Assembly: GCA_964247055.1 (NCBI GenBank)
Contig: OZ176058.1
Location: 1,302,001 to 1,366,000, forward strand
DNA: 64,000 bases
Origin: Paragordius varius
Taxonomy: Eukaryota; Animalia; Nematomorpha
Direction of reading: 5' to 3'
Shown here: one piece after another, positions 1-25,647 of the stretch
Numbering within the stretch: the first letter of the stretch is position 1
Layout: each line of letters begins with the position of its first letter
Notes under the pieces: model-generated
Database searches by the model: none
Seen by the model: only the letters and a program-made list of their open reading frames with translations
Told to the model about the DNA's origin: nothing
Made by a program: the position numbers and the translations under genes

Positions 1-2481
1 AGCGATTTTAGAGTTACCATCAACAAGTGGCTCACTGAGGACTCTCATATCATTCCAACGTTTGATGATTTAGTGAGTAAGATTGGCGAAGGCCAAGTTT
101 TCACTAAGATTGACTTGAAAGATGCCTATCTACAAATGCCCATAACCAAAGAATCACAAGATCTCTTGACAATTGCGACTCACAAAGGATTTTTTCGCTA
201 CAAAAGGATGCCTTTCGGACTGTCAACAGAACCAATAATTTTCCAACGAGTCATGGACCAGGTTATAAAAGATTGTCCCGGCACTTGTGCATATTTAGAT
301 GATGTTTTAGTAACTGGCAAATCTGAAGAGGAACATTTAATAAATCTTAATAATGTTTTAAATCGGTTAGAATTAGCAGGTTTTAGATTAAGAAAAGATA
401 AAATAAAAATTGGTGAACCTTCAGTAAGTTATCTGGGATTTGAAATAAGTAATAAAGGTATAAGTCCTTGCAAGAATAAAGTAAAAGCAATCAATGATTT
501 TAAAAAACCTGTGGATAAAAAATCTTTAAGAAGTTTTCTAGGATTTTTGACGTTTCATGAAAGATTTATACCCAAGCTTCAATTGATTGTAAGTGACTTA
601 CATAGTTTAACAAGTAAGAACGTTAGATGGAACTGGTCGGAAAAACATGAGAATTGTTGGAAAGCCGCTAAGGAATTATTAAGTGAACAAGTATTTTTAA
701 CACCATACAATCCGGATAGAAAGTTAGTAATTGAAACCGATGCCTCAGATATAGGGTTTGGATGTATTCTAAGTCATGTTGTAAATGGTGAAAGGAAACC
801 CATTGCCTATGGTTCAAGAAAATGTAGTACCGCAGAATCGAACTACTCCACGATAGAAAAGGAATTAAAGGCTATTGTTTTTGCATTAGAAAAGTTCCAC
901 AACTTCATTTATGGTAGAAAGTTTGAAATTTTGACAGACCACTTACCACTTGTGAGGTTAATAAATAGGGATAGAAATTTGAAAGAAATACAAAATGCGA
1001 AAATTTTAAGATGGGTGAACCGTTTGAATGATTATGACTTTGAACTTAGTTATCAGGCGGGTCCCAAAAATAGAGCTGATTACTTATCAAGATGTCCCAG
1101 TGATGATAATGTCGACACAATCGATAGAGATTACATGGTAACTAGATATCTTAGGTTTCTTAATTGTCATAACGTTCAGTTAAGTCGCGATGAAATTCGG
1201 AGAGAAACGGTTAAAGATAAAATTTTGCAGAAAGTAATTAAGGCGATTCATAACCAAGATTGGAGTGATGTTGAGTTGGCTGGGTTTACGAATCGGAAGG
1301 GAGAGATTTCGTACCAATACGGATTGGTCAGTTTAAACGATCGAATTATCATTCCAGAAAGCTTACAGTCAAACGTGGTCAACTACTTACACAGCGGGCA
1401 CAATAACGTAGAAACAATGAAAGCAATGGCAAGGTTCACTTGTTTTTGGCCGAAATTAGAGAACGATTTGGTAAGAAGATACAGTGAGTGTAGTGCATGT
1501 CAGATAAACAAGCCAAGCCTAGTTGAAAATCCGACTTATCATTGGGATCCAAATGCTGCGATATGGGAACGGTTACACATCGATATAGCGGGACCAGTTG
1601 ACGGGTATTATTGGTTGTTACTGATTGATAGCTCATCCAAATGGGCGGAAGGGTTCATGTTAAAAAAGGTTAATTCGGTAAACATATTGCATAAACTCGA
1701 GGAAACCTTTGCCAGGTTTGGGTTTCCGAGGACGGTTATTAGTGATAATGCTTCTTATTTTAGTAATTCGTACTTCACATCCACTCTAACAAACTTGGGT
1801 ATTAAACACGTGAGGGTAACCCCCTATCATCCTAAAAGTAATGGGATGGTAGAAAGGTTAGTGGGGACCCTCAAGGGCAAGTATAGAAAAATCAAAAATG
1901 ATAATATTTCACCACAAGAAGCCTTCAATACCACTCTATGGTCATATCGTAATTCAATACATGCGACTACAAAAGAAACCCCGTTTCAACTACTCTTCAA
2001 ACGAGTATCTCAAACACCCCTCACCTGGATCAACACAAAAGCAACAATCTTAGACGCACCCCGTCCACGCCGTGAATTCTCAATAAACCAACCCGTAATG
2101 ATGAGAAACGAACAAAATGTTGGATGGCGAGCCGGCGATGTTGTTGATAGAACGGGTCTCCTTTCGTACAGTGTGTGGGATCAGGTAAACCAGAAGATTG
2201 TCAGAAAGCATGCAGATCAGTTGAAACACGTAGACCTACCGGCCAACTCAACCGCACCAAACAATAGTAATGATAGTAATATAGACAATAACAATAATAA
2301 TAATGATAGTAGTATTGATAATAATAACAATAGTAATAACAATAATAATGATAAAATAAATGATAATAATAATGATAGTAGCAATGATAACATTAATAAT
2401 AATAATGACAATATCAATGCAAATCCGCACGAGCGACGTTACCCCGAGAGAATTCGGCGACCGCCGGTCCGGTTTTCTTAA
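1..2481 (+). CDS. pol: Ty3/gypsy pol polyprotein, 5'-truncated by the window edge (RT, RNase H, integrase)
   Basis: Frame +1 is open from base 1 (SDFRVTINKWL...) to TAA at 2479-2481. RT motifs KIDLKDAY, MPFGL and YLDD; RNase H ETDASD; integrase HHCC (HSGH...CSAC) and core HIDIAGP...SDNA...NGMVER; RT-RH-IN order is gypsy-type. Confidence 0.97.
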   Translation, partial: SDFRVTINKWLTEDSHIIPTFDDLVSKIGEGQVFTKIDLKDAYLQMPITKESQDLLTIATHKGFFRYKRMPFGLSTEPIIFQRVMDQVIKDCPGTCAYLDDVLVTGKSEEEHLINLNNVLNRLELAGFRLRKDKIKIGEPSVSYLGFEISNKGISPCKNKVKAINDFKKPVDKKSLRSFLGFLTFHERFIPKLQLIVSDLHSLTSKNVRWNWSEKHENCWKAAKELLSEQVFLTPYNPDRKLVIETDASDIGFGCILSHVVNGERKPIAYGSRKCSTAESNYSTIEKELKAIVFALEKFHNFIYGRKFEILTDHLPLVRLINRDRNLKEIQNAKILRWVNRLNDYDFELSYQAGPKNRADYLSRCPSDDNVDTIDRDYMVTRYLRFLNCHNVQLSRDEIRRETVKDKILQKVIKAIHNQDWSDVELAGFTNRKGEISYQYGLVSLNDRIIIPESLQSNVVNYLHSGHNNVETMKAMARFTCFWPKLENDLVRRYSECSACQINKPSLVENPTYHWDPNAAIWERLHIDIAGPVDGYYWLLLIDSSSKWAEGFMLKKVNSVNILHKLEETFARFGFPRTVISDNASYFSNSYFTSTLTNLGIKHVRVTPYHPKSNGMVERLVGTLKGKYRKIKNDNISPQEAFNTTLWSYRNSIHATTKETPFQLLFKRVSQTPLTWINTKATILDAPRPRREFSINQPVMMRNEQNVGWRAGDVVDRTGLLSYSVWDQVNQKIVRKHADQLKHVDLPANSTAPNNSNDSNIDNNNNNNDSSIDNNNNSNNNNNDKINDNNNDSSNDNINNNNDNINANPHERRYPERIRRPPVRFS

Positions 2482-2753
2482 GGGGGAAGTGATGTTAGGC
2501 AAATTTGAAAGATATACTTTATTTTTATAATATTTTTCTGTGTTATATGCAAATGTGATATACATACTTTGGTTATATATTATAACTTTAACCCCTTATT
2601 TGAATTGTATTATTTTTGATATTTTTTGTGTTATATGTAAATATACAACCTTTGTTACTTGGAATTTTATTGATATAATGCAAATCATGGACAGTTAAAA
2701 TTGCTATATATACACCTTAAAAAAACCAAATAAATAGTTCAGTTCATTTCACA
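2480..2753 (+). mobile_element. Polypurine tract and probable 3' LTR of the gypsy element
   Basis: AAGGGGGAAG (2480-2489) overlaps the pol stop and is followed by TG at 2490. AATAAA lies at 2729-2734 and a ...TTCACA end at 2753. The right end is approximate because the 5' LTR is outside the window. Confidence 0.75.
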
Positions 2754-2875
2754 TTGCTTTTATTATCTCTTATCTTAAAAGATAAAAAATATGAAGAATA
2801 TAAATTTTACGTATTGAATTATAACTTTTTCCAAAGATATAATAAATATTAATTTTGAATTATAAGTAAATCTAA

Positions 2876-2949
<74 letters not shown>

Positions 2950-3085
2950 AAATTAACTTTTATCATAGGATTTCAATATAATATAAATTTTACGTAATTA
3001 TTATATATATATATATATAATTGAATTATAACTTTTATTTTTAAACGTATAATAAATATTAATTTTGAATTATAAGTAAATCTAA

Positions 3086-3143
<58 letters not shown>

Positions 3144-3190
3144 AAATTAATTTATCATAGGATTTCAATATAATATAAATTTGACGTAAT

Positions 3191-3224
<34 letters not shown>

Positions 3225-3577
3225 GAATTATAACTTTTATTTTTAAAAGTATAATAAATATTAATTTTGAATAATTATAGAATCTCAATATATATATATA
3301 TATATATATAATTATAACTTTTTATTCCAAAAATTATAAAAAATTTATAAAAAAATTTAAAAAAAAAATTTTCATTTCAAAAAAGTCATTTTGTAGAGCC
3401 ACAAAAATCTTAACATAAAATAATTTGACCAAAATTTAGAAATCAATTTTTTTTTGAAAAAATTAAATATAAAGATTACGTAATTTATATATATATATAT
3501 TATAACTTTTCATTAATATATATATAATATTATTAAATTCTTATAATTTTAAAATTTATAAATTTTTATAAAAAATT

Positions 3578-3686
3578 TTATTTCAAAAAAGTCATGAGGT
3601 ATCCAGGATTCTCAAGCAAATCCTTCCAGAACCGCAAAAATCTAGCAGCTGTTGCGCCATCTATAATTCTGTGATCAGCACTTAAA
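3578..3686 (-). pseudogene. Partial copy of the 3' half of DBT terminal exon B (LSADHR...TFLK*)
   Basis: 109 nt match 4166-4274 with 4 mismatches; there is no in-phase acceptor at its start. Confidence 0.9.
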
Positions 3687-4165
3687 TATAAATTCTTTAA
3701 ATATTGTATTAAATTCATTTTATATAATTTGTTTATATATAAATATATATATATATCAAAGATATAATAAATCAAATTTATTTTATAATCACAGTATCTC
3801 AATAATAAATATAATTTTTTATTCCAAAAAATATAATAAATATGGATAATTTCAAATTTATTTTATAATCATACTATCTCAATATGAATATATGTATATA
3901 TATTATATTATATATAAATTTCACGTAATTTAAAATATATATATATATATATATATATGCATATATATATAACTTTTTGCAAAGATATAATAAATATTAA
4001 TTTTGAATTATAATTATAGAATGATTTAGAAATATATAAATAACACATATATATAAATTTCACGTAATTTATTAAATATATATATATATATATATATATT
4101 TATAACTTTTTATTTATAAAATAACTTTTTTTCCAAAATAATAAATTTTTTTCAAAATTTATAAT

Positions 4166-4357
4166 TTATTTCAAAAAAGTCATAAGATATCCAGGGTTCT
4201 CAAGCAAATCCTTCCAGAACCGCAAAAATCTAGCAGCTGTTGCGCCATCTATAATTCTGTGATCAGCGCTTAAACTAACATACAACAGCGAGTGGCGAGA
4301 ATGTGAATTTAATCCACTGCAGATCACCTGATTTGCATTTTCATTTTTTTCAATGGT
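4166..4357 (-). CDS. DBT: DBT terminal exon, duplicate copy B ([11 protein letters not shown]...[15 protein letters not shown]...TFLK*)
   Basis: TAG acceptor at 4358-4359, 64 codons including TAA, catalytic DHR motif intact; paralogous to 18118-18303. Expression not demonstrated. Confidence 0.8.
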
Positions 4358-4368
4358 CTAAAATATTT

Positions 4369-4409
<41 letters not shown>

Positions 4410-4493
4410 TTTGAAAAACTTTGAAAATAAAATTCTAAATGGTAATTTTTAAAAAATAGCTGTTTTTGATTATCATTTTTTTCAATGGTCTAA

Positions 4494-4539
<46 letters not shown>

Positions 4540-5122
4540 TTAAAAAAAGCAATATTAATAAACGAAGAATACAGTAAAATTATATAATTAAACTTTGAAA
4601 ATAATCATCAATTATAATTGAAAAACTAGTAAAATATTATTTTAATTATATATATATATATATATATAAATAAATATATATATATATATATATATAATAT
4701 TTTCAAAAAAAGTATTATTAATAAAATAAGAATTCGTGATTTTGATTATCATTTTTTTCAAAGGTCTATTATATAATTAAAATTATATATAAAAATAGAT
4801 AAAATTTGTCAAAAAAAGGTATATTAATAAAATAAGAATTCGCTAAAATAAAAAAATCTAAAAAACTTTTAATAAAATGAAGATTAATTTAAATAGCTTT
4901 GATTTTCATTTTTTTCAATAGATAAATCATCCAAAATTATAAATTTATAATTTAAAAAATAATCATAATTTATTAAAGATTAGTAACATAAAATATATAT
5001 ATAGATATTTAAAAAAAACTTGTAAATAAGTATCTACAATTGGAAAACTAGTAAAATGGCAATTTATTAAATTAAATAGCTGATTTTGATTTTCATTTTT
5101 TTCAATGGTCTATAAAACATTT

Positions 5123-5169
<47 letters not shown>

Positions 5170-5376
5170 TTTGAATGTTCTAAATCATCTAAAATGATAA
5201 ATATTATTATATATATATATATATAAATATTTGAATGTTCTAAATCATCTAAAATGATAAATATTATTATATGTATATATATATCTTTTAAAAAAGTGTT
5301 TAAAAATCGAAAAACTAGTAAAGAGGTAATTTATTTAAATAGATGATTTTGATTTCCATTTTTTTCAATGTTCTAA

Positions 5377-5412
<36 letters not shown>

Positions 5413-5560
5413 TTTTAAAAAAGTATTATTAATATAAAAAGATGAATTTATTATATAAAATATATTAAAAAAATCTTAAAAATTAGTATCAAGTAATGAT
5501 TGAAAAACTAGTAAAATGGTATTTTAATTATCTTACAAAACTTAAAAACGAGTTTTTAAA
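4358..5560 (-). repeat. Acceptor-side echoes of DBT terminal exon B
   Basis: Repeated ...gattttcattttttcaatggtcta units (e.g. about 4450, 4740, 4895, 5080, 5345) equal the exon's first 30-40 nt plus its AG. Confidence 0.85.
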
Positions 5561-5599
5561 AAAATCTTCACTGATCATGAAACATGAAATTTAAAATAA

Positions 5600-7613
5600 A
5601 TAAAAAATTAAATTTCCAATATTTTTTAAAACTTGTAAAATATTGAAATATTTTATAAATAAAAATTCCAAAATAAATTTAAAAATAAATTCCAAAAATA
5701 AATTACCAATATTTTATATAATAAAAATTCCAAAAATAAAAACAAATTTCAAAAATAAATTACTAATAATATATTAAATAATAATAAATCTTGATAAAAT
5801 AAAAATTCCAAAAATTAAAAATTTACATCTTAAAATAAATTTTCCAAAAATAAATTACCAATATTTACAAAAACTTGTAAAATATTAAAATATTGATATT
5901 TTTAATTAAATAAAAAATAATTAAATTTATAAAATAAAAATTTTATTAAATAAAAATTCAGAAAATAATAAAATAAATTTTAAAAATAAATTACCAATAT
6001 TTTTTACAAAAACTTGTTAAATATTAAAATATTTTATTAAATAAAAAACTTTTTTAATCGCTATAAAACGAAAATTTTGAAAATTTTAATAAAAATAATA
6101 ATTAAAATAAAAACACCAAAAACTTGTAAAATATTAAAATATCTTATTAAAATATTTATATAAAATATTTTTTAAAAAACTTGTAAAATATTAAAATATA
6201 TTATAAAATAAAATTTCAAAAAATTATATTTAATATATATAAAATAAAACTCCAAAAATTAAAAATATTTTACAAAATAAAAATTTAAATTTCCAAAAAT
6301 TTAAATCAAAAATAAATTTCAAAAATAAAAATAAACTACCAATATTTTTCCAAAAACTTGTAAAATATTAAAAATATAAAATTGACATATCTTATAAATT
6401 TATAATAAAATTATAAAATATTTTATAAAATAAATTTAAATTAGATTTACAAAAACTTGTAAAATATTAAAAACTTAACAGTTTTAAAATATCTTATTAA
6501 ATATAAAATATATTAAAACATTTATAATTAAAAAATCTAAAATAAAATAAATTCCAAAAATAAATTACCAATATTTTTTACAAAAACTTGTAAAATATCA
6601 AAACATTTTATTAAATAAAAAATTAGTTAAAATATATTATAAAATAAATTCCAAAAATAAGTTAAAATTTTAATAAAAATAATAAGATTATCTGACAAAA
6701 ACTTGTAAAATAATTTACGATAAAAAATTATATTAAAAGATCTTATTAAATAAAAATAATATTAAAATATTTTATAAAATAAAAATTTAAAATAAAATAA
6801 TAAATTACCAATATTAATAGCTAACAAAACTTAAATTAAACTAGTTTAATTAGATACAAACTTTTTTTATTGCTATAAAACAAATATAAATATAAATTTT
6901 TAAAATATTTTATAAAATAAAAATTCCAAAAATTAAAAAAAACCAAAAAAATTATTTAAATATATTAAAATATTTTATAAAATAAAAATTCCGAAAATTT
7001 AAAATAAATTAAATTTTCCAAAAATAAATTACCATTATTTTTTACAAAAACTTGTAAAAACAATAAAATATATTATTAAAATATTTTATAAAATAAAATT
7101 TTAAATTAAAAATAAATTACCAATATTTTTCCAAAAATTTAAACAAAAAATTTTAATAAAAATAAAAATTGACATATCTTGTAAATATATGATAAAATAT
7201 TTCATAAAATAATCAAATTGACATCTTAAAAATTTTAGATAAAAAATTATATATAAATATATTAAAATAATTTATACAATTAAAATTCCATAATTTCCAA
7301 ATATAAATTACCAATATTTTTCCAATAGCTAAAAAAACTTAAATTTAAACATTTCTAAAAAACTTTTTTATTGCTATGAAACAAAAATTTTGAAAATTTA
7401 AAAATAATAATTTATTAAATAAAAATTCCAAAAATTAAAAAAAACCAAAAAAATTATTTAAATGTATTAAAATATTTTTTAAAATAAAAATTTCAAAAAT
7501 TTAAAATAAAAACAATATACTCTTAAAAATATAAGATAAAATATTTTATAAAATAAAAATTTAAAATATTTTATAAATTAAAAATTTAAATTAAATAAAT
7601 TTCCAAAAATTAC
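5600..7613 (-). repeat. Donor-side echoes of DBT 72-nt exon B
   Basis: About 10 copies of aataaattaccaatattttt(ccaatagcta), i.e. exon end GGAAAAATATTG plus GTAATTT donor (e.g. 5701, 5851, 5990, 6335, 6562, 6803, 7095, 7246). Confidence 0.85.
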
Positions 7614-7685
7614 CAATATTTTTCCAATAGCTATGATAGCTACCTCAGGCCATAATATTAATGGTTTCGCATGAATTCCTCCAAT
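7614..7685 (-). CDS. DBT: DBT penultimate exon, duplicate copy B ([24 protein letters not shown])
   Basis: AG/GT intact, 72 nt, phase 0-0; differs from 21240-21311 at 2 synonymous sites. Confidence 0.8.
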
Positions 7686-7739
7686 CTAAAACGCAAAAAA
7701 AAAAATTAAAAATAAATTTTTAAGAATAAAAATATTTAA

Positions 7740-9420
7740 ATTATACGGACAAAACGTAAAATATAAAGACAAATCGATTTTTTCTAAATAAAATAATATG
7801 AATATAAGTAATTTGCTTTCAAAATTGAAATAGAGTTACATATATTAGTAAAACAATCAATTCTATATAATTGTAACTAAAAAGTGTAAGAAAATATAAG
7901 TTAAAAAAAGTATGGTTAGGTTGTCTTTTAGGAAGAATAAAACTTTAAAAATATAAAAACAAAACGTAAAAATATAAAGACAAATCTATTTTTCTAAAAT
8001 CTTGATTTATTTCAATATAACTCTTTAAATGACAAGTGTGAAATATATATATATATTACTAACAATATCAATTTTAGAATTGTAATTAAACCTATAAAGA
8101 CAAATATTTTTTCTAAAACCAACCCCATACTTTTTAAATCATTTATTTCAATATAACTACTCATTGTCTGTAAATTTTCTAACAATTCTATTTACATAAA
8201 AAAGTTGAAATTATACGGACAAAACGTAAAAATATAAAGACAAATCTATTTTTTTTAAAACCAATCATATACTTTTTAAAACCTTATTTTTTCTCATATA
8301 AGCTATTTAGTTACAATTATAAAATATAGAATTGATTGTATTAGATATATATATATATATATATCTATTTACTTTGTTGTTTACAAAACAATCAAAGTGT
8401 TATATTTGAAAAAAAAATCAAGATTTAGTAAAAGTATGGTTGTTTTTTAGTAAAAAAAATATTTGTCTTTATATTTTTACGTTTTATCCTCACATATAAT
8501 TTAAGTTTTTACTGTTAAAATATAAAGACAATTGTATATTTTTTCAAAAAGACAACCATACTTTTTTGAATCTTGATATTTGTAATTTAAATATAATTCA
8601 TTGTTTTATATGGCAAAGTGTGAAATATATATATATATATATATATATTAAACAAAAATAATCAATTCTATATAAAATTGTAAAATTATTTATATAGCAT
8701 AAATTAAGGTTTTGAAAAATATGGTTGTCTTTTAAGAAAAACAAATATTTGTCTTTATAATTTTACGTTTTGTCCATAGTATAATTTCAAAAAAAATCAT
8801 TGTTTTATATGGACAAAGTGTGAAATAGATATATATATGTATATATATATTACTAATACAATCAATTCTATATTTTACAATTGTAACTAAATAGATCTTA
8901 TGAGAAAAATCAAGATTTAGTAAAAGTATGGTTGTTTTTTAGTAAAAAAAGTATTTGTCTTTATATTTTTACGTTTTGTCCTTAAGTAAAATTTTAATTT
9001 TTGTCTATTTACCTATATGGACAAAACGTAAAAATATAAAAACAACTAGTTTTTTCTAAATAAAATCTTGATTTTTTTTTCAATATAACTCATTGTTTTA
9101 AATGGCAAAGTTTGAAATAGATATATATATATATATATATATTACTAACACAATCAATTCTATATTTTACAATTGTAATTATATAGCTTATGAGAAATAT
9201 TGAATGGTTTAAAAAATATGGGGAATATTTGTCTTTATATTGATTTGTCCATAGTATATCAATATAACTCATTTTTTTAATTATGGACAAAACATAAATA
9301 TAAAGACAAATCTATTTTTTCTAAAAGACAAATAACTACCCAACCCTATTTTTTATATTTTGATTTTTTTAATTATATATATATATTATATATAATTCAT
9401 TGTTTTAAACTGTAAAGTAT
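7740..9420. mobile_element. Cluster of tandem and inverted fragments of MITE family A
   Basis: Repeated tatacggacaaaacgtaaaaatataaagacaaat and its reverse complement; homologous to 21360-24090. Confidence 0.75.
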
Positions 9421-9585
9421 AAAATAAGGTGTAAATTGTCAACACACTAAAATCTTATTTTAAATTTTATATATTTTTTTCCAATATAGTTTAAAAAATT
9501 AGTATTTTTATCCATTTTTAATTAATATTTATTAATTAAATAATTTACAAAACATTAAAAAAAATATTTTATTTAAAAATTAAAT

Positions 9586-9622
<37 letters not shown>

Positions 9623-9625
9623 TAC

Positions 9626-9829
9626 CGAACCAATGTTTGAAACAGTGAATGTCCCACCCGTTAAATCCGCCATCTTTGGCTTCCCAATCAGCCGGCTGTC
9701 ACGTGTTAGCCGTGCCAAGTCACGTGAAATTTGACCAATAGAAAGACGCTCAACTCCTTTAATATTTGGTACCACGAGGCCTAATTCCACATTTTGAGTC
9801 TCTATAGCCACGCCTATATTATGTTCTGA
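9626..9829 (-). CDS. DBT: DBT exon 9, duplicate copy B ([13 protein letters not shown]...[11 protein letters not shown])
   Basis: AG/GT intact, 204 nt, phase 0-0, conserved [10 protein letters not shown] motif; 17 nt differences from 24755-24958. Confidence 0.8.
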
Positions 9830-11251
9830 CTAAAAATTAATTAATAAAATAAAATTAAAAAAAAATATTTTTTTTAAATTAATATTTATAAATTAATTTA
9901 TTATTATTTTGTTATTTATTTTATTGTTTTTTTTTTCAAAAAAAAGTTTTAGTGAGTAAAAAAATAATTTATGCATTTATAAGAATTAAAATATCTTATT
10001 ATATATATATATATATATAGATACTAAAAAATAATTTATAAAATAAAATTAAATTTAAAAAAACATTTTTTTTAAATTAATTAATATAAATTAAAATAAA
10101 ACTTTTTTTTTAATAAATATAATAAAAAAAAAATATAAAAAAATTTATTTTATTATTATTTTATTGTTTTTTTTTTCAGAAAAAAATTATAGGTTTAAAA
10201 TTTATATAGAGACTAAACAATTTTATGCATGTTATTATAAGAAATAAAATATATCATTATTTATATATATACTAAAAAAAATATTTTTTAAATTAATTAA
10301 TATATAAATTTAAATAAAATTTTTTAAAATAAATTAATTTTTTAAAATAAAACTATTTAAAAATTAATTAATAATTTTATTGTTTTTTTTATCAAAATCT
10401 TTATATTGTTTTTTATTCAAAAAAAAATCAGGTTTTTGTATTAAGCAGTATTGAGTATTAAAATAGATAATTTTTTACATTTTTTATAAGAATTAAAATA
10501 TATCATTATATATAGATATATATACTAATTAAAAATTAATTTAAAAAATATATTATTTTAATTAATATATAAATTAAAATTGAAAAAAAAATTATTTGAA
10601 TAATTTTTTATCAAAATATTTATATTGTTAAATCTTTCAAAAAAAGTTTATAGGTTTTTGTATTATGCAGTAGTGAGTGTTAAAAATAATTTATATATTT
10701 TTTTATAAGATAAATTTATCATTTTAGAAATATATTATATATATATTAAAGCTAAAATTAAAATATTTTTTAATAAAAAATGATTACTTTTTGCTTAAAT
10801 TATTTTTTATTAATAATATTAATATCTACGGAAAAAATTAATAAAATATGTATTCAATTAAATTATACGTTATTTATGAAATAAAACTTTTTTGATATAT
10901 TTAAATATTTTTCATAATACATTGGAAATAAGATAACGTTAATTTTTTAAATATATATAATTAAAAAATTAATAATATATAATACTCATAAAAAAATTAG
11001 ATTTTTTTAAATTAATTAAATATATTTACATATATATAAAAATAAATAAATTAAAATTATAAAATATATATATATATATAAAAAATTAGATTTTTTAAAA
11101 ACCACATTTTTTATAAAAAATTAAATTAAAAATTCTTTCAAGAAAATTATAACCATTACGAAAATTAGTTAAATACCATATATTTAATATATATATATAT
11201 ATATATATTATTGGTGGAGTGAATAAAAAATTTATTTTTTTTTGCTAATAG

Positions 11252-11821
11252 GATTCAACTGAACTGGTCACACCTCTACCAACTTATACCCAAGCGACCA
11301 CCAACAATTCCTCCCAAAAAGATTTTATCGACAATAATTTACCATTTAATGAAGCAGTTAATAAAAATGAGGATTATTCAAAATCAAATAAAAATGCAAA
11401 AATGTCGACAAATTTAGCACTAAGTGCAAGATCTCACAAACCCGGATCATTACTAAATAGCAATGAAATCGCGAAAAGAAATTCTTTTAACGTTCCGCAA
11501 AATAATTTGGAAAACGAATTTGAAGATTTTGAATTAAATACTGTAATGGGCGATACTTTTAAGAGAAACGCTTCGAATTCCTTAAAAATCAATAAAAATC
11601 AAATTAAAAGCGAAAAAAATAGCAGTCGAAATGCAGATGATTTTGAAAATGGCGAAAATTTAAGCAATGAAAAAGATCAATCGTCTGATTATGATGACAC
11701 AGATGATGAAAATATGAATGAACCCAAAACAGATGATGGAACAAAAAATAAAGCATCTAAAAATGTTGAAATTAACCCAACTACAAATTCTCTCTTATTC
11801 AAGTGCTGTTCTATACAATGA
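11252..11821 (+). CDS. Orphan terminal coding exon of an unidentified gene; acidic low-complexity peptide ending ...LLFKCCSIQ*
   Basis: Poly-T acceptor tttattttttttgctaatag ends at 11251. A phase-0 frame is open for 190 codons (DSTELVTPLP...; the track lists only the part from ATG 11402). In-frame stops lie just upstream and no upstream exons are seen in the window. Confidence 0.7.
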   Translation, partial: DSTELVTPLPTYTQATTNNSSQKDFIDNNLPFNEAVNKNEDYSKSNKNAKMSTNLALSARSHKPGSLLNSNEIAKRNSFNVPQNNLENEFEDFELNTVMGDTFKRNASNSLKINKNQIKSEKNSSRNADDFENGENLSNEKDQSSDYDDTDDENMNEPKTDDGTKNKASKNVEINPTTNSLLFKCCSIQ

Positions 11822-12000
11822 ATTTTATAGATAAACATTTGAATTTGCCATTTTTTAACATTGTTTTTGACAAATCGCAAAACTTAGCATAATTTGAACG
11901 TAAAACCGTGCAAAAAAGGTGCCAGTGAGATGTTATCAAAAACTTTAAATCAAAATTATATATAATCTATAAATATATACATATATAATCCAAAATATTA

Positions 12001-12502
12001 CAGTATGAGTAAGTATACATTGCTAGTTTTTCATGAACTATTGTCAGATAACATATAAATCAAAAGGCAGTATACCATTTACAGTTCAAATTCACCTTTA
12101 AACAATTCAAATTTACCCTTGAACATTTCAATACCCTTGAGCAAGTCAAATTTTAAAAATAAATTATGTGATTGTTTTCGAGCTAGTATATCTTATTATC
12201 AATATGAAATATATCTTTATCGCATAGTTTATTATTTTTACAATATTATTTTAATTAAGAACACAATTTCTAATTTTTAAAATATACGTTGTTTTTAATT
12301 CGAAACATATGGTGAATTTAAAATGTTAGTTAATTTGAATAGTTCAAGGGTAAATTTTAATTGTTCAAGGGTGAATTTTAATTGTAAATGGTATATAATT
12401 GGTTGATAGTTATTGCTTTATTGTTTTTAACCAATTATAACTTTTAACTGCATATGATATCTGGCAATATTTAAAAATAGCAATACATATTTACTCATAC
12501 TG
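12001..12502. mobile_element. MITE family C (TIR CAGTATGAGTAA), TA-flanked, carrying a nested family B element
   Basis: ta|cagtatgagtaagtata ... tatttactcatactg|ta; a second copy without the insert lies at about 14092-14293. Confidence 0.75.
12073..12393. mobile_element. MITE family B (TIR TACCATTTACAGTTCAAATTCACCC), TA target duplication
   Basis: Long TIRs with subterminal aattcacccttgaac repeats. Other copies at about 20848-21108, 24137-24445, 28423-28762, 37934-38203, 41698-42001 and 53362-53722, with tandem fragments at 54570-55490. Confidence 0.85.
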
Positions 12503-12712
12503 TATATTCATATTTTATAATCCTACCCATCTCACTTTAATATCTACAAGTCATTTTTACCAATTTTTTTATACAAGTTTTTCTTATAAAATTATTTTAT
12601 AGATGTTTATATTTCATAAAGTTCTCATATATCATTCATTTATAGATATATTTTGCAGATTGAATATGCATTAAGCAATAAATTTTTATACGATATTTTT
12701 AGTGATACCTTA

Positions 12713-13978
12713 CAGTAAAAATTATTATACGGACAAAACGTGATTATATAACAAAAGTTTTTTTCAAAGACAACCATACTTTTTAAAACTCTAATTTCTC
12801 CTATTAAAAAGATTTAATAATAATTGTAAAATAGGTAATCGATTGTATTACCAATTAACATATCTATTCCAAACTTTGAAAACATTGTGTATATAAAAAT
12901 CAATTTTTAAAAAGTATGGGGTTGTCTTTTAGAAAAAAATAGTTGTCTTTATATTTTAACATTTTATCCGTATAATTTCAATTTTTACCGTAAATCTGCG
13001 AATATATATGATCCATTCCCTTAAAATAAAAGATGAGAGGCTTTTTAAATAGTTATTTAAACTTTAAGAAATAAAAATAATAATTTTTTTAAGACTAGCT
13101 CAGCTTTTGCTATTTTATGGAAACAATGTTTTGTGTTTAAGATTTGATAAAATATTTTTCAACAGTAAAAACTCAAAAAAGGGCAAATAAATTAATAAAT
13201 GGATACGTACTTTTATAATATTATCTAAAAAAAACCAAATTATTATTGATTTTCCAAAAAGCGAAATCTTAATTACATTTTTACATTATATTTCAACTTG
13301 ATGGATGATATAAATGTTAAATTAAATTTAAATATAGTAAAAATGCAAATTATACGGACACAGCGTAAAAGTATAAAGGCAAATATTTTTTTCTAAAAGA
13401 CTACCATACTTTTTAAAACTTTATTTTTTCTCCTAAAAACTATTTAACAAATTTAAAATATAAAATTGATTGTGTTAGTAGTATATAAATATATTTCACA
13501 CTCTGCCATTAAAACAATGAGTTATATTAATATAAATATATAAAGTATGGTCATTTAGGAAAAAAAATGTCATTATATTTTTACGTTTTGTCCTTATAAT
13601 TTCAATTTTTACTGTATATATACCAAAACAAAAAAATATATCCAATTAAATTCATAAAAATAATTCCTAAGTAAAAACTTTAACATAACAATATAGTAAA
13701 AACTGAAATTATACGGACAAAATGTAAAAACAAGGACAAATATTTTTATTTAAAAGATAACCATAATATTCCAAATCTTAATTTATATTAAAAATTAAAT
13801 TACAATCGTATAATTGATTGCTGGGTTATCAATTTACATCTTTATTTTTTAAATTTAGTTTAAAAAAAATGAGTTTCATTATAAAATCAAGAAAAAAGTA
13901 TTGGTTGTTTTTTACAAAAAAAATATTTGTCTTTATATTTTTACGTATTGTCCTAACGTATAATTTCAATTTTTACTG
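12713..13978. mobile_element. Three copies of MITE family A (about 280 bp; TIR CAGTAAAAAYTGAAATTATACGGACAAAACG; TA flanks; Tc1/mariner-like ends)
   Basis: Copies at 12713-12990, 13335-13614 and 13694-13978; further copies at about 45415-45709, 46023-46280, 59577-59857 and 60513-60775. Confidence 0.85.
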
Positions 13979-14380
13979 TATATTTATAATTTTTAAACCA
14001 ATTTTTGATTAAATAATCCTGTAATTATGGTTTATAATTTTAAAAAGTCAATAATACCTTCCTAATCGTAAAAATAAACTTATTATTTACACTATGAGTA
14101 AGTATACCTTGTACTAGAAAGTTATTAATTATTATTGCCAAATAGCATATATACAACAAAGGGGGCAGTATTATTGGCTTATAATTATTCTTTTCACATT
14201 TTAACATTATTGACCAATAATACTGCCCCCTTTGTTGTATTTACTATTTGGCAATAATCAAACTTTCCAACACAATGTATATTTACTCATACTCCTTACT
14301 TAGCTACAAAATTTCCTAAAATAAAATTATTTAACTAGAATTTCTAATAAAATAATTATACAACCATTTATTAATGAGAT

Positions 14381-14435
<55 letters not shown>

Positions 14436-14869
14436 GTCAACTTATGTAGTCTTTATAAATATACCGTTTTTTAATATACATTTATATATATATATAAAAA
14501 AATAAAACATTTTAATCTAAAAAGTATAATAAATATTAATAAATTTTCCTAAATTCTTGTAAAAATTAGAAAAAAATTATAACTTTCTATTTAAAAAAAA
14601 ATAAAAATATTGACAAATTCATATTTATTTTATAATAATAGAATCTCAATATGAAGAATATAAATTTTACCTAATTTATTATATATATATATATATATAT
14701 GACATTATAACTTTTTCCAATAATTTTGAATTATAATTATAGAATCATTTAGAAATATATTTATAATATATTATATATATATATATATAATTAAACTTTT
14801 TTATCCAAAATAATAAATTTTTATTTTTTTTATAAATATTTATATTTTCATAAATTTATTAAAAAAATT

Positions 14870-15093
14870 TCATTTCAAAAAAGTCATGAGGTATCCAGGG
14901 TTCTCAAGTAATTCCTTGAACCGTAAATAACTTAACAATTTAACTATAATTCCTAATAAAGAATTTTATTAAAACATAATTAACTCTACAAATATAATAT
15001 TGAATTCATTCTATTAAATAATATGTTTATTAATAATTTTTATTTAACAAAAATTAATAAATTTATTTTTATAATTATAGTATCTCAATATGA

Positions 15094-15124
<31 letters not shown>

Positions 15125-15426
15125 ACTTTTTCCAAAGATATAATATATATTAATTTTATTTAGTATATAATTATAGTATCTCAATATAAATAATATATAT
15201 AAAATTATAACTTTTTATTCCAAAAAATATAATAAATATATAAATTTTACGTAATTTTATATTTATTAATATATATATTTATAAATTTAGATTTTTTATT
15301 CCAAATAGTTTAATAAATATAGATAAATTCAAATTTAGAAAAAAAATTTAAAATCCTAAAAAACAATTTAACTATAATTTGTAATCAAATTTTTATTAAA
15401 ATATAACTAACTCTACCAAAAAGTGA

Positions 15427-15465
<39 letters not shown>

Positions 15466-17167
15466 GTTTTTATTCCAAAATTATAAATTTTTATTTTTTT
15501 TATAAATATTTATATTTTCATAAATTTATTAAAAAAAATTCATTTCAAAAAATCATGAGGTATCCAATTCAAATTTATTTCATAATCATAGTATCTCAAT
15601 ATGAAAATATAAATTTTAGGTAAATATATATATATTATATATAATTATTACTTTTTATTCCAAAAAGTATAATAAATATTTTCATAAATTCTTGTAAAAA
15701 TTTTATAAAAACATATTTCATTTCAAAAAAGTCATGATATATAAAATTATATCTTTTTATTTTTCCAAAAATATAATAAATTTATTTTTTTTAATTTTCA
15801 TAATTATAAAAAATTATAAAAATTATTTCAAAAAAGTCATAAGATATCCAGGGTTCTCAAGTATTCCTTCCAGAACCGCAAATGATTTAACAATTTAACT
15901 ATAATTCCTAATAAAAAATTTCATTTAAATATAAACTCTATAAATATTATATTAAATTCATTCTATTAAATAATGTGTTTATAAATAATTTTTATTTAAA
16001 AAAAAATTAATAAATATTAATTAATTATAATTTTTTACTCCAAATAGTTCAATATATTAATAAATTCAAAATTTATTTATATAATCATAGTATCTCATGA
16101 TAAAAAATATATAAATTTTAAGTAATTTATATATATATATAAATAAAATTATAAAAGATATAAATATTAATTTTGAATTATAATTATAGATTATACATTT
16201 CTATAAAAGAATAAATATGGATAAATTCAAATTTATTTATATAATCATATTATCTCAATAAATATTAATATTGAATCATAATTATAGTATTTCAATAATA
16301 TATATATATATATATATATATGATAAATATATATAACTTTTTATACCAAAAACATAATAAATATAATAAATTTTTATTTTTTTATAAATTTTTTCAATAT
16401 TAATAAATTTTTGTAAAAATTTATAAAAATTATTTCAAAAAAGTCTTGAGGTATCCAGGGTTCTCAATCAATTCCTTCCAGAACCGCAAATAACATAACA
16501 ATTCAACTATAATTCGTAATAAAAAATTTCATTTAAATATAAACTCTATAAATATTGTATTAAATTCATTCTATTATATAATATGTTTAAACTTTTTCCA
16601 AAGATATAATAAATATTAATTTTGAATAATTATAAAAAAATGTAAAATCCTAAAAAAACAATTTAACTATAATTTGTAATCAAATTTTTTTTAAATATAA
16701 CTAACTCTACCAAAAAGTGATTAAATAATAAATATACATATAATAAATATAATAAATTTTTATTTTTTTTCAAAATAATAAATTTTTATAATTTTCAAAA
16801 TTTATAAAAAATAATTTTATTTCAAAAAAGTCATAAGATATCCAGGGTTCTCAAGTAATTCCTTCCAGAACCGTAAAAATCCTAAAATAACAATTATTTA
16901 ACTAAAAATTATAACCAATTATCATGAAAATATAATCATAGAAAACATAATTTATTTATGAAATAATCATATAATCATATTTTATCGATATAATCCAAAT
17001 ATATATATATATATATATAATAAATTCAAATTTATTTTATAATCATAGTACCTCAACATATATATATATTTATAGATTGGAATATAACTTTCTAATTCTT
17101 TTATAAATATATATATATATATCAAAGATATAATAAATATTAATTTTAAATTATAATCATAGTATCT

Positions 17168-17206
<39 letters not shown>

Positions 17207-17341
17207 AATGACTTATGTAGTCTTTATAAATATACCATTTCATTTAGTATATAAATATATATACATATACATATATATATTTAATTATAACTTTTTTAAA
17301 GCTATAATAAATATTAATTTTGAATTATAATTATAGAATAT

Positions 17342-17375
<34 letters not shown>

Positions 17376-17665
17376 TAAATTTTCAAAATTTATAAATTTT
17401 TATATAATTTCAAAATTCTTAAAAAATTTTCAAAATTTATAAATTTATTTCAAAAAAGTCATAAGATATCCAATTCAAATTTATTTTATGAATATAGTAT
17501 CTCAATACGTAATTTATATATATATATAATAAATATATATATATATATAAAATTATAAATTTTCATAATTTCTTGTAAAATTTTTATAAAATAAAAAATT
17601 ATTTCAAAAAAGTCATAAGATATCCAGGGTTCTCAAGCAAATCCTTCCAGAACCGTAAAAATCTC
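14870..17665 (-). repeat. Array of stop-codon-end echoes of DBT terminal exon A
   Basis: ttatttcaaaaaagtcat(aagat/gaggt)atccagggttctcaag... fragments at about 14871, 15541, 15719, 15824, 16431, 16818, 17447 and 17600, separated by (TA)n-rich modules. Confidence 0.9.
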
Positions 17666-18117
17666 AACATAAAATAAGTTAACCAAAATTTATAACCATT
17701 TTTTTTTTGAAAAAATAAACACAGAAAACATAAATTATTTATGAAATAATCATATATTCATATTTTATCGATATAATCCAAATACATATATATATATATA
17801 TATATATACATATATATAAATGTCAACTTATGTAGTTTTCATAAATATACTGTTTCATTTAAGTTTACGTAATTTACTATATATATATATATATATATAT
17901 AACTTTTTATTCTAAAAAACATAATAAATATTAATTTGAATTATAATTATAGAACCTTAATATAAATAATATATATATATATATATATATATAACTTTTT
18001 ATTCCAAAAAACATGATAAATATAATAAATTTTCATATAATTCCCAAAAATATATTAAATATTTTTATAAATTTTTTCAAAATTTATAAATTTTTATGAT
18101 TTTTAAAATTTCAAAAT

Positions 18118-18303
18118 TTATTTCAAAAAAGTCAAAAGATATCCAGGGTTCTCAAGCAATTCCTTCCAGAACTGTAAAAATCTAGCAGCTGTTGCGCCAT
18201 CTATAATTCTGTGATCAGCGCTTAAACTAACATACAACAGCGAGTGGTGTGAATGGGAATTTAATCCACTGCAGATCATCTGATTTGCATTTTTTTCAAT
18301 GGT
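18118..18303 (-). CDS. DBT: DBT exon 11 (terminal), copy A
   Basis: tag|ACC ATT GAA ... TTG AAA TAA; TIEKNANQM...[10 protein letters not shown]...LLTFLK*. Confidence 0.93.
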
Positions 18304-18364
18304 CTAAATTTATATATATATATATATATATATATTTAAAAATTTTTAATATTACATAATATAC

Positions 18365-18395
<31 letters not shown>

Positions 18396-18526
18396 TTTTC
18401 AATGGTCTATAAAAGATTTAAAATATATAATTTTTTTAAAAAAAGGATTTTTAATATTACATAATATATATATATATATAATATATATTTTAATTTATCA
18501 TTTTTTTCAATGGTCTATAAAACATT

Positions 18527-18571
<45 letters not shown>

Positions 18572-18620
18572 ATATAATTTTTAAAAAATTATTATTAATT
18601 ATAGATAAATACAGTAATAT

Positions 18621-18658
<38 letters not shown>

Positions 18659-18708
18659 AAAATCTTTGAAAATAAGATTTATATAATAATTAAACTAGTA
18701 AAATGGTA

Positions 18709-18746
<38 letters not shown>

Positions 18747-19270
18747 TTTGTAAAAGCATTATTAATAAAAAAGAATTCGGCAACATAAAAATATATATAT
18801 ATTTCAAAATCTTTGAAAATAGATTTGCAATTTACATTAATTAAAATAGCTGATTTATCATTTTTTCGATATTCTAAAATATTTTAAAATTATATATATA
18901 TATATATTATATATAATTTTTTTAAAAATTATTAATAAAAGAAGTATCAATAATGATTATATTTATATATATATATTTATAAAAATAAAACCCAAATTGT
19001 ATCAATTGAAATACTAGTAAAATGGTAATTTATTTAAAAAATTAGCTGTTTTTGATTATCATTTTTTTCAATTGTCTAAAATTATATATATATATAAATA
19101 AAATTCAGACCATTGAAAAAAATGATCAAAAGCCATTTAAATTAATTTCCATTTTATTAGTTTTTCAATCATTTTTGTTTAAATCTTATTTTCAAAGTTT
19201 TTGAAAGATATATATATATAAAATTTGTTAAAAAAAGCATTATTAATAAAAAAAAGAAGAATTTGGCAAC

Positions 19271-19313
<43 letters not shown>

Positions 19314-19399
19314 TTAAAAAACTTTAAAAATAGGTTTGCAATTTACATTTATAATAATAGCTGATTTTGATTATCATTTTTGTCAATGTTCTAAATTAT

Positions 19400-19451
<52 letters not shown>

Positions 19452-19497
19452 TTTTTTTAAAAAAAAGCAATTATTAAAAAATGAATTCGGCAACATT

Positions 19498-19561
<64 letters not shown>

Positions 19562-19605
19562 TATATAATTTAAAAAAAGCATTATTAATAAAAATAAGAA
19601 TTCGG

Positions 19606-19649
<44 letters not shown>

Positions 19650-19806
19650 AGCATTGTTAATAAAAGAAAATTCAATTTAAATTTATATATTTATTAAAAT
19701 AAAAGATCCAAATAATATCAATTGAAATACTATTAAAATGGCAATTTATTATTTAAATAGCTGATTTTGATTTTCATTTTTTTCAGAGGTCTATTATAAA
19801 TTAATT

Positions 19807-19854
<48 letters not shown>

Positions 19855-20061
19855 TTTTTTTCAATGTTCTAAAACATTTAATTTCTAAAAAAAGTATTAT
19901 TAATAAAATAAGAATTCAGCAACATAAAAAATATATATATATTTTTTAAAAATGGAAATTAATTTAAATAGCTTTTGATTTTCATTTTTTTCATGTTCTA
20001 AAATTTAAAATTATATATATAAAATTTGTTAAAAAGAGTATTATTAATAAAAAGAATTCGG

Positions 20062-20097
<36 letters not shown>

Positions 20098-20601
20098 TCA
20101 AAAAACTTTGAAAATAAGTATCAAATATAATTGAAAAACTAATAAAATGGCAATTTATCTGAATAGCTGATTTTTGATTATCATTTTTTTCAAAGGTCTA
20201 TTATATATTAATTAAAATTATATATATATATATATATATATATTTTAAAATAAGCATTATTAATTAAAGATGAGTTGTAAAAAATAGGCATATATCTTTC
20301 AAAAAAATTTGAAAATAAGGTTTATATAATGTTTCAAGTAAATTGGCAATTTATTCTAAGATCAGCTGATTTTGATTATCATTATTTTCAATGGTCTATA
20401 AAACATTCAAAAAAATTGGTTTTCAACATTCTATAATAAAAATTTCCTATATATATATATATATATATATATTGTAAATTTTTTTGAAAAAAAGCATTAT
20501 TATTAAAAAAAGAAAAATTAAATAACATAAAAAATATAAATCTTTTGAAAAACTTTGAAAATTAGTATCAAGTAATGATTGAAAAACTAGTAAAATGGCA
20601 A

Positions 20602-20655
<54 letters not shown>

Positions 20656-23600
20656 TTTTAAAAAAAGTATTATTAATTAAAGATGATAGTTGTAAAAAAT
20701 AGGTATATATATTTCAAAAAAATAAAATAAGGTTAATGTTTCTAGTAAATTGGCAATTTATTCTAAGATCAGCTGATTTTGATTATCATTTTTTCAATAG
20801 TCTATAAAACATTTTAAATTATATAATATATATATATATATATATATATCATTTACAATTCAAATTCACCCTTGAACAATTCCAATTTACCCTAAAAATT
20901 ATTGAGTTTTCGGGCTGCTAATATAACTCATCATTAATTTAAAATAAATTTTTACGATATAGTTTATTATTTTTTATGCATTATATTGAAACAAAATTTC
21001 ATGTTTTAAAAGATTTTAAAATAAAGGTAATTTTAATTTTTAAAAAAAGATATTATTATTTTAGAGTGAATCTAAATTGTTCAAGGGTGAATTTGAACTG
21101 TAAATGGTGTATATATTATATATATATATATATATTTCAAATGAATTAGAAAATAAGAAATAAATATTATATAAAATAAATTTTTTTAAAATAAAATAAA
21201 TTTAAATAAAAAACTTAATATAAATTAAAAATAAATTACCAATATTTTTCCAATAGCTATGATAGCTACCTCAGGCCATAATATTAACGGTTTCGCATGA
21301 ATTCCACCAATCTAAAGGGCACAAAAAAAATCGAAAATATTTTTAAGAATAAAAATATTTAAATTATACGGACAAAACGTAAAAATATAAAGACAAATAT
21401 TTTTATGAATATAAGTAATTTGCTTTCGAAATTGAAATAGAGTTACATATATTAGTAAAACAATCAATTCTATATAATTGTAACTAAAAAGCTTATATAA
21501 GAAAATTAAAGTTTAAAAAAGTATGGTTAGTTTGTCTTTTAGAAAAAAAATATTTAAATTATACGGACAAAACGTAAAAATATAAACACAAATATTATTT
21601 TTTAAGACAAATTTATATTTTTGTAAATAAAATCCTGATTTATTTCAATATAACTCATTGTTTTAAATGGCAAAGTATGAAATATAAATGTAAAATTTTC
21701 AACAATACAATAATGATTTAAAATATAAAACTTGAAATTTAAGGACAAATCTATTTTTTCTAAATAAAATCTTTATTTTTCTGAAAATACAACCATACTT
21801 TTTGAATCTACGTTTATTTCAATATAACTATTCATTATATGTAAATTTTCAAACAATAATGATTTACAGTAAAAAAATATTTAAATTATACGGACACAAT
21901 GTAAAAATATAAAGACAAATATTTTTTTCTAATTAAAATCTTGATTTATTTCAATATAACTAACTCATTGTTTTAAATGACAAAGTGTGAAATAGATATA
22001 TATATATATAAGCTTATAAGAGAAATATTTACAGTAAAAATATAAAGACAAATCTATTTTTTTATAAATAAAATCTAGATTTATAACAATATAACTAAAT
22101 CATTGTTTTAAAATGTTAATTCATTTTAATTTAACTCATTATCTGTAAATTTTCAACAACAGAATAATAATTTAAATCTAAAATTGAAATTTTTCTTTGG
22201 ACAAAAGGAAAAATATAAAGACAAATATTTTTATTTAAAAGACAGCCCCATACTTTTTAAATCATTTATTTCAAGATAACTTACATTGTTTTAAATTGTA
22301 AAATATGAAATAGAAATGTAAAATTTTCAACAATACAATAATGATTTAAAATATAAAAGTTGAAATTTAAGGACAAAATGTAAAAATATAAAGACAATTT
22401 TTTTTTAAAAGACAACCATACTTTTTAAAATGTTTTAATGCATTTCAAGATAACTTACATTGTTTTAAATTGTAAAATATGAAATAGAAATGTATATTTT
22501 CAACAAAACAATAATGATTTAAAATAAAAAAGTTGATATTATACGGACAAAACGTAAAAATATAAAGACAAATATTATTTTTTAACTAAAAGACAACCAA
22601 CATACTTTTTAAAATGTGAATTTATTTCAAAACTCATTGTTTTAAATTTTCAACAACACAATAATGATTTAAAATATAAAAGTTGAAATTTAAGGATAAA
22701 ACGTAAAAATATAAAGACATATCCATATTTTTTCTAAAAAACAACCATACTTTTTAAATCATGAGATTTATTTCAATATAACTCATTGTTTTATATGGCA
22801 AAGTGTGAAATAGATATATATATATATATAATTAATACAATCAATTCCATATTTTATAATTGTACTAAATAGATTTTATAAGAAAAAATTTACAGTAAAA
22901 ATATAAAAATAAATGTATATTATTTCTAAATAAAATCTAGATTTATTTCAATATAACTCATTGTTTTATATGGTAAAGTGTGAATTAGAGATATATTTTA
23001 CTAACAATAATCAATTCTATATTTTATAATTGTGTAATTAAATTATTTATATAGCATAAATTAAGATTTTGAAAAGTATGGTTGTTTTTTAGTAAAAAAA
23101 TATTTGTCTTTATATTTTTACGTTTTGTCCTTAAGTATAATTTTACTGTATCTACTATAGACAAAACGTAAAAATATAAAGACAAATATTTTTTTCTAAA
23201 TAAAATCTTGATTTTTTTTTAAATATTAACTCATTGTTTTAAAATGTTGATTTATTTCAATATAACTCATTGTTTCAAATTTTCAACAACACAATTATTT
23301 ACAGAAGTTAAAATTTAAAATTATACGGACAAAACGTAAAAATATAAAGACAAATATTTTTTTTAAATAAAAGACAACCAACCCCATACTTTTAAAATTT
23401 TGATTTTTTTGAATATAACTCATTGTTAATTTTCAACAACACAATAATGATTTACAGTAAAAAGTTGAAATTATACGGACAAAACGTAAAAATATAAAAT
23501 CAAATTTTTTTTTTCGAAATAAAATCTTAATTTATTTCAATATAACTCATTGTTTAAAATGACAAAGTTTGAAATAGTATATAAATTAACACAATCAATT

Positions 23601-25144: not shown

Positions 25145-25195
<51 letters not shown>

Positions 25196-25610
25196 TTATA
25201 AAAAAATAAAATAAAATTAAATAAAAAATAATTTTTTTAAAATAAATTAATTTTTTAAAATAAAAATTTAAAAAAAATTAATTTGATTTAATTATTATTA
25301 TATCAAAATATTTTTTATTTTTCAAAAAAAAATTTATAAGTTTTATTTATGTAGTGAGTATTGAAAAAAAGCATTTTATGCATTTTTTATAAATTTTAAA
25401 ATATATCATTATATATATATATATACTAAAAAAAGTATAAAAAAAACTTTATTTAATTAATGTATAAATTTAAATAAAAATATAAAATTAATTTATTTAT
25501 TATTTTATTGTTTTTTATTTTCAAAAAAAAGTTATAGGTTTTTGTATTATGCAGTATTGAGTATTAAAATAAAAATTTTTTTACATTTTTTAATAAGGAT
25601 TATAATATAT

Positions 25611-25647
<37 letters not shown>

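Follow-up and report, generated by a model that had tools for sequence, protein, structure and literature searches.

Duplicated 3′ ends of two convergent genes

The window analysed here is the whole 64-kb stretch G000:C9:1302001-1366000 (position 1 is its first base, and negative positions lie to its left) of an assembly of 110.5 Mb in 44 contigs. Its GC content ranges from 9 to 36% per 2 kb, and its genes are of metazoan type, with AT-rich introns on the kilobase scale. On the minus strand it contains two cassettes, A and B, of the 3′ part of DBT, each with the catalytic-domain exon (exon 9) and the last coding exon. The translations of all four exons matched PF00198, the 2-oxoacid dehydrogenase catalytic domain (E 3e-16 to 6e-12), and in cassette A neither exon 9 nor exon 11 of DBT showed a frameshift, a stop or a lost splice site. 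The plus strand carries, between the two cassettes, a terminal coding exon that we call X2 (Table 1).

The open frame of X2 runs from 11252 to 11818 and is closed by a TGA at 11819-11821, and its C-terminus, KCCSIQ-stop, is a CaaX prenylation box (CSIQ). A T-rich, pyrimidine-rich tract lies directly 5′ of the acceptor AG (11250-11251). This AG ends an in-frame TAG, so the frame has no upstream extension and the intron phase must be 0. An earlier note on this DNA had described an intact terminal exon behind a strong plus-strand acceptor, with no upstream partner in the window; the exon is indeed intact, with 189 codons plus stop, and no plus-strand partner exon was seen inside the 64 kb.

We searched the 110.5-Mb assembly with positions 11200-11900 and found two places only, the query itself and G000:C9:1296950-1297657, 16,252 bp upstream and just left of the window, with 87% identity. 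This second copy, exon X1, has a 187-codon open frame and shares with X2 the acceptor context, the phase and the last eight codons, in which there is a single, synonymous change; its stop is TAA and that of X2 is TGA. X2 has an ATG at 11402-11404, and the X1 counterpart (window -4845) is ATT. An ATG-started open reading frame of 139 amino acids that ends in the CaaX box (11402-11821) is thus found in X2 only.

We then compared the 40 kb left of the window with the window by BLAST for colinear blocks. The blocks, between which lie satellite-rich stretches, define two units, and the order on the plus strand is X1, DBT cassette A, X2, DBT cassette B. These results show a single tandem duplication of about 15-16 kb, with breakpoints in the last intron of the plus-strand gene and in intron 8 of the convergent DBT gene. 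Each parent gene retains one uninterrupted copy, and the spare 3′ ends, DBT-A and X2, stand back to back between them. At the junction of the units, pieces of DBT intron 8 abut, back to back, pieces of the neighbour's last intron; this junction is AT-rich simple sequence, which limits the placing of the breakpoint to the interval 10.8-11.18 kb.

This arrangement is what the earlier note had proposed, namely a unit running from just upstream of the last exon of a convergent neighbour to DBT intron 8, with a paralogous exon to be expected left of the window and of a gypsy element. The exon was found there together with its 3′ flank (-5074..-3246), and the convergent plus-strand neighbour is present upstream of X1. 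The details at the edges needed correction. The DBT intron 8 homology does end, as had been claimed, yet it fades by about 10.8 kb (9623-10792 against 24752-25940) and not near 11200. The X2 acceptor does lie just inside the block, but 74 bp inside, with a sharp block start at 11178, where about 40 bp had been estimated. A second copy of the 11.8-14.3 kb flank is present left of the gypsy element as predicted, but colinearity over 13.0-14.3 kb is only patchy because this part of the flank is made up of repeat copies, from a dispersed family of about 290 bp. The alternative that the earlier note had kept in reserve, that a cassette had been inserted into the last intron of the neighbour, is refuted by the existence of the paralogous exon.

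Given that the duplication is tandem and the genome rich in repeats, we also considered an assembly artefact in which two haplotypes were placed side by side. Nothing specific speaks for it. Divergence between the copies is 9-19%, with many indels besides, and their dS of about 0.2 greatly exceeds normal heterozygosity. One copy carries a 4.6-kb retroelement, the satellite lengths differ, and the 104 kb contain no N gaps. We therefore regard an artefact as extremely unlikely.

Table 1. Features of the locus and its surroundings. Positions are those of the window unless they carry the label of another stretch (L003 to L007) or of a contig.
Feature	Position	Strand	Evidence or remarks
Putative regulator exon 1	L005:677-2162	+	basic helical motif at start, phase-1 donor at end
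Asparagine/serine-rich low-complexity insert in exon 1	L005:810-2050	+	about 400 residues
RVxF-type motif K-S-V-K-F	L005:2100-2114	+	14 residues before exon 1 end
Ankyrin-matching regulator exon	L005:8177-8458	+	Pfam Ank/Ank_2/Ank_4
Post-ankyrin exon	L004:1718-1847	+
Penultimate exon	L003:3315-3524 (window -6685..-6476)	+	70 codons, phase-0 donor CAA/GTAAAT
Exon X1	-4995..-4432	+	187-codon open frame, stop TAA
Left (upstream) duplication unit	about -5074..10792; in-window part 1..10792		colinear BLAST blocks with 11178-25940
Ty3/gypsy-type LTR retroelement, young	1..2787 (3′ portion in window); whole -1800..2787 (L003:8201-10000 plus window)	+	LTRs and ORF
DBT last coding exon, copy A (spare, distal)	4169..4357	-	PF00198, E 6e-12
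DBT catalytic-domain exon (exon 9), copy A	9572..9829	-	PF00198, E 3e-16
Unit junction	10793..11177		AT-rich, (TA)n runs, no clear colinear partner
Right (downstream) duplication unit, whole	11178..25940		colinear BLAST blocks
Duplicated last-intron tail of neighbour gene	11178..11251	+	74 bp, 89% identity to X1 copy; pyrimidine tract and AG
Exon X2, distal copy of CaaX-bearing last coding exon	11252..11821	+	189 codons + TGA, ending KCCSIQ
Duplicated 3′ flank (probable 3′ UTR and intergenic)	11822..12985	+	81-85% identity to -4431..-3246
DBT last coding exon, copy B (proximal)	18121..18303	-	PF00198, E 3e-12
DBT catalytic-domain exon (exon 9), copy B	24752..24958	-	PF00198, E 9e-16
Colinear block	11178-12700 with -5074..-3606		83% identity
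Colinear block, dispersed repeat	12710-12962 with -3514..-3266		73% identity
Colinear block	21146-21928 with 7523-8255		78% identity
Colinear block	24752-25940 with 9623-10792		73% identity
About 290-bp repeat copies	12710-12990, 13330-13615, 13690-13980, 8200-9400, 21500-24100, 45400-45700, 59580-59760	both	many more in L003-L005
Local tandem repeats in DBT intron 8	10430-10700, 25535-26150		motif about 220-280 bp
Tandem array	L004:3300-6200 (window about -16700..-13800)		period about 1,060 bp
Tc1/mariner-type transposase-like fragment	L006:146-690 (window about -39854..-39310)	-	judged by eye
MYPT1/Mbs-type paralogue	L007:3529-8421 (G000:C7:3842029-3846921)		on contig 7

The retroelement at the left edge of the window is a 4.6-kb gypsy element that is found in the left unit only, set in simple-repeat DNA. 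It has 295-bp LTRs of 99.3% identity and an uninterrupted plus-strand gag-pol-type open reading frame of 1319 amino acids (-1478..2478), and it was inserted long after the duplication. The dispersed family of about 290 bp, with 70-88% identity between copies in both orientations, fills the introns of both genes as well as their intergenic DNA, and it obscures the colinearity of the flank copies. Short local tandem repeats were seen in DBT intron 8 of both units. Further upstream, a tandem array with a GC content of 35-44% and frames open on both strands sits within an intron of the plus-strand gene, and a transposase-like fragment was also noticed (Table 1).

The gene upstream of X1

The plus-strand gene starts about 40 kb upstream of X2. 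Its exon 1 opens with a basic helical motif and carries, shortly before its end, the sequence K-S-V-K-F, which at the level of the motif reads as an RVxF-type PP1 docking site. The first ankyrin repeat begins with the next exon and the following exons encode MYPT-type ankyrin repeats, with Pfam Ank, Ank_2 and Ank_4 matches for exon 3 and one further exon; another exon continues the post-ankyrin region. The penultimate exon has a perfect phase-0 donor and ends 1,480 bp before X1. From the strand, the order, the match in phase 0 and the CaaX end expected of such a gene, we infer that X is joined to these ankyrin exons. We also observed that exon 1 holds an asparagine- and serine-rich low-complexity insert between its N-terminal and PP1-docking motifs; this insert is unusual for a PPP1R16-type family and swamped word-based searches.

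By architecture alone, the owner of X is very probably a gene of the PPP1R16 / MYPT3 / TIMAP / MYPT-75D type. In the MYPT family the CaaX box marks TIMAP, MYPT3 and MYPT-75D (PMC6737228, PMC3560227, PMC3723691) and separates this subgroup from MYPT1 and MYPT2, which are without it (PMC6737228, PMC3723691). Like PPP1R16A/B (MYPT3, TIMAP) and Drosophila MYPT-75D, the gene described here, with X as its last exon, would combine an N-terminal basic helix motif, an RVxF-type motif just before the ankyrin repeats, MYPT-type ankyrin exons, K-R-N-S sites in a serine-rich tail and, at the C-terminus, a CaaX box; it differs from them in the approximately 400 asparagine-rich residues between the N-terminal and docking motifs. 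The CSIQ tail is a predicted farnesylation site, through which the protein would be attached to membranes.

The possibility that the owner is the MYPT1 gene itself was ruled out by a separate MYPT1/Mbs-type locus on contig 7, and flies likewise carry a separate MYPT1-type paralogue beside the CaaX-type gene. The N-terminal exon of the contig 7 paralogue matched chicken MYPT1 (PDB 1s70_B) in one stretch with an E value of 1.5e-23. Exon 3 of the putative regulator is 55% identical to the corresponding exon of this paralogue. Exon 1 gave no match to 1s70_B and has only a short N-terminal motif in common with the paralogue (weak, E 0.002).

Protein and profile searches were conducted with the exons one by one. 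Pfam placed no family on X1, X2 or regulator exon 1, the ESM Atlas gave no usable match for X2 or the N-terminus of exon 1, and a PDB search with regulator exons 1 and 3 returned nothing specific. Word-index protein searches with X2, with the whole of exon 1 and with its N-terminal 46 residues were blank, which says little given the limits that the length window and asparagine-rich words set to such searches. A full HMMER search with a 48-aa ankyrin exon gave no family assignment, as giant ankyrin-repeat proteins filled the list through their summed scores. A named orthologue of the PPP1R16 type was retrieved neither by the word-index and HMMER searches nor from the Atlas.

Divergence and coding constraint of the duplicated exons

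Over 185 aligned codons, X1 and X2 are 86.5% identical in amino acids, so that the two tails differ at about one residue in seven (about 14%). In both, the K-R-N-S-type sites are retained, as is the CaaX end. In the pairwise comparison of these codons, in which the changes are not split by branch since no outgroup was found, dS was 0.199, dN 0.073 and dN/dS 0.37. Bootstrapping gave a 95% interval of 0.20-0.69 for the ratio, with a probability of 0.002 for values of at least 1 and of 0.15 for values of at least 0.5. The differences are concentrated at third codon positions (10, 13 and 27 at positions 1, 2 and 3; chi-square p = 0.007). Moreover, all six indels in the exon are exactly 3 nt long, against 2 of the 17 in the 880-bp 3′ flank whose lengths are multiples of three (Fisher p = 0.0003).

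The copies are 91.4% identical in the exon, compared with 89% across the 74-bp intron tail and 81-85% in the flank. The dS of the exon equals the divergence of the flank (15-19%), indicating that the higher identity of the exon comes from fewer nonsynonymous changes and not from recent gene conversion; conversion limited to the exon was thus not indicated. The copies of DBT exon 9 in cassettes A and B differ with a dS of 0.226 and a dN/dS of 0.15, and those of the last DBT exon with a dS of 0.10 and a dN/dS of 0.35, the latter from few sites. The dS of DBT exon 9 is close to that of the X pair, which fits one duplication making all the copies.

The default outcome of such a duplication would be a pair of promoterless, back-to-back 3′ fragments, and the main competing explanation is accordingly that the duplication is real and X2 is a silent relic. 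DBT-A and X2 would then never be spliced in, and the X2 frame would be open by luck, by slow decay or by occasional conversion from X1. With 25 neutral substitutions, the frame stayed free of stops in about 33% of simulations. The bootstrap interval of dN/dS spans values expected with one dead copy, and the ratio of 0.37 is by itself compatible with such a copy; the dead-copy model predicts at least 0.5. The indels argue in the other direction: at the flank indel rate, where 15 of 17 are not multiples of three, about five frameshifts would be expected in a dead copy, and X2 contains no frameshift, stop or lost splice site. The third-position excess also argues against a relic, and the equality of exon dS and flank divergence tells against recent conversion as the rescue. 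The CaaX box and the acceptor of X2 are both intact, with a pyrimidine tract cleaner than that of X1, and the co-duplicated DBT-A cassette has a dN/dS of 0.15-0.35. Taken together, the substitution and indel patterns are good but not conclusive evidence that both X copies have been kept under coding constraint since the duplication, and we consider a silent relic possible but rather doubtful.

A coding X2 might also be expressed from a transcript of its own, started at the junction or by read-out from the gypsy 3′ LTR; the ATG at 11402 would then give a CaaX-tailed peptide of 139 amino acids. The ATG-started frame unique to X2 and the gypsy element upstream on the same strand fit such an origin. 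However, the signs of selection begin at the first codon of the exon and extend throughout it, so that the 50 codons before this ATG are covered as well, and the conserved acceptor and intron tail favour splicing. A new transcript as the source of X2 expression therefore appears very unlikely.

Putative use of X2 as an alternative last exon and comparison with known systems

Given that both X copies are apparently under coding constraint, X2 would most likely be used as an alternative, mutually exclusive last exon. We propose that the phase-0 donor of the penultimate exon at window -6476 (G000:C9:1295524) would splice either to the X1 acceptor at 1297005 across an intron of 1.5 kb or, if the transcript bypasses X1 together with its poly(A) site, to the X2 acceptor at 1313252 across an intron of 17.7 kb that would run antisense through DBT cassette A. 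Both isoforms would keep the prenylated end and would differ in the tail residues that distinguish X1 from X2. The same would hold in mirror image for DBT, whose distal cassette A would be accessible only to transcription that runs antisense through X2.

Some features of the locus count against this use. A transcript bound for X2 must ignore the X1 poly(A) site, and must then cross the same-strand gypsy element with its LTR termination signals and about 8 kb antisense through DBT-A. That a young element now stands on the path to X2 is a point in favour of a silent relic. So is the lack of a selector RNA structure: when the last intron was examined for docking or selector pairing with the conserved 50 nt before each acceptor, the result was no better than for shuffled sequences. 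Weighing the sequence evidence, we regard the use of X2 as an alternative last exon as plausible, with the chances about evenly balanced; and a duplication of both 3′ ends with X2 as an alternative last exon of the PP1 regulator is, as a joint account, the best explanation of the locus and a somewhat probable one.

The interleaved antisense 3′ ends might further couple the isoform choice of the PP1 regulator with that of the mitochondrial E2, through transcriptional interference or sense-antisense pairing. In such a coupling, the distal end of each gene would require antisense transcription through the distal cassette of the other. We consider this extension unlikely.

Few kinds of splice variant have clear functional weight. 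Homologous alternative C-terminal exons belong to these few, and to our knowledge their birth is rarely caught. The locus described here represents an event of intermediate age, with a dS of about 0.2, in which one ordinary duplication with two intronic breakpoints gave both genes ready-made spare ends, each with an acceptor, a coding sequence, a stop and a 3′ flank. Should these ends be in use, the locus would be a natural test of a new distal last exon in competition with an old poly(A) site, and of whether overlapping 3′ ends can couple convergent genes. The variable part of the regulator would be the tail adjoining the prenylated end, and in TIMAP and MYPT3 the tail near this end bears regulatory phosphorylation sites. 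For the PPP1R16/MYPT-75D family, we met no duplicated CaaX exon in the limited literature.

Partial 3′ gene fragments left by tandem segmental duplications normally decay. As in partial gene duplicates that arise from segmental duplications with intronic breakpoints, the parents are intact here and promoterless 3′ fragments lie in the middle; unlike fragments that decay, X2 and DBT-A still have open frames and splice sites, and at a dS of about 0.2 they show an excess of synonymous change. Tandem exon duplication is a well-documented source of homologous C-terminal exon swaps, which are enriched among such events and make up 77 of the 236 in human (PMC9741552), and the 3′ exons of tropomyosin and the terminal-exon clusters of Drosophila pip are examples (PMC9741552, PMC9013439). 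With such tandem-duplicated alternative C-terminal exons, the locus shares two homologous terminal exons on one strand with the same acceptor phase and their own stops, and a tail that is probably disordered with a conserved key motif at its end. It differs from them in that the duplicated block is 15-16 kb long and not a single exon, that the last three coding exons of the convergent gene are included, and that the spare ends are interleaved and mutually antisense. In a literature search that was not exhaustive, we found no description of one block giving two convergent genes interleaved antisense ends. Thus, alternative C-terminal exons made by tandem duplication are of a known kind, and what is unusual at this locus is that one block serves two convergent genes whose ends are interleaved in antisense.
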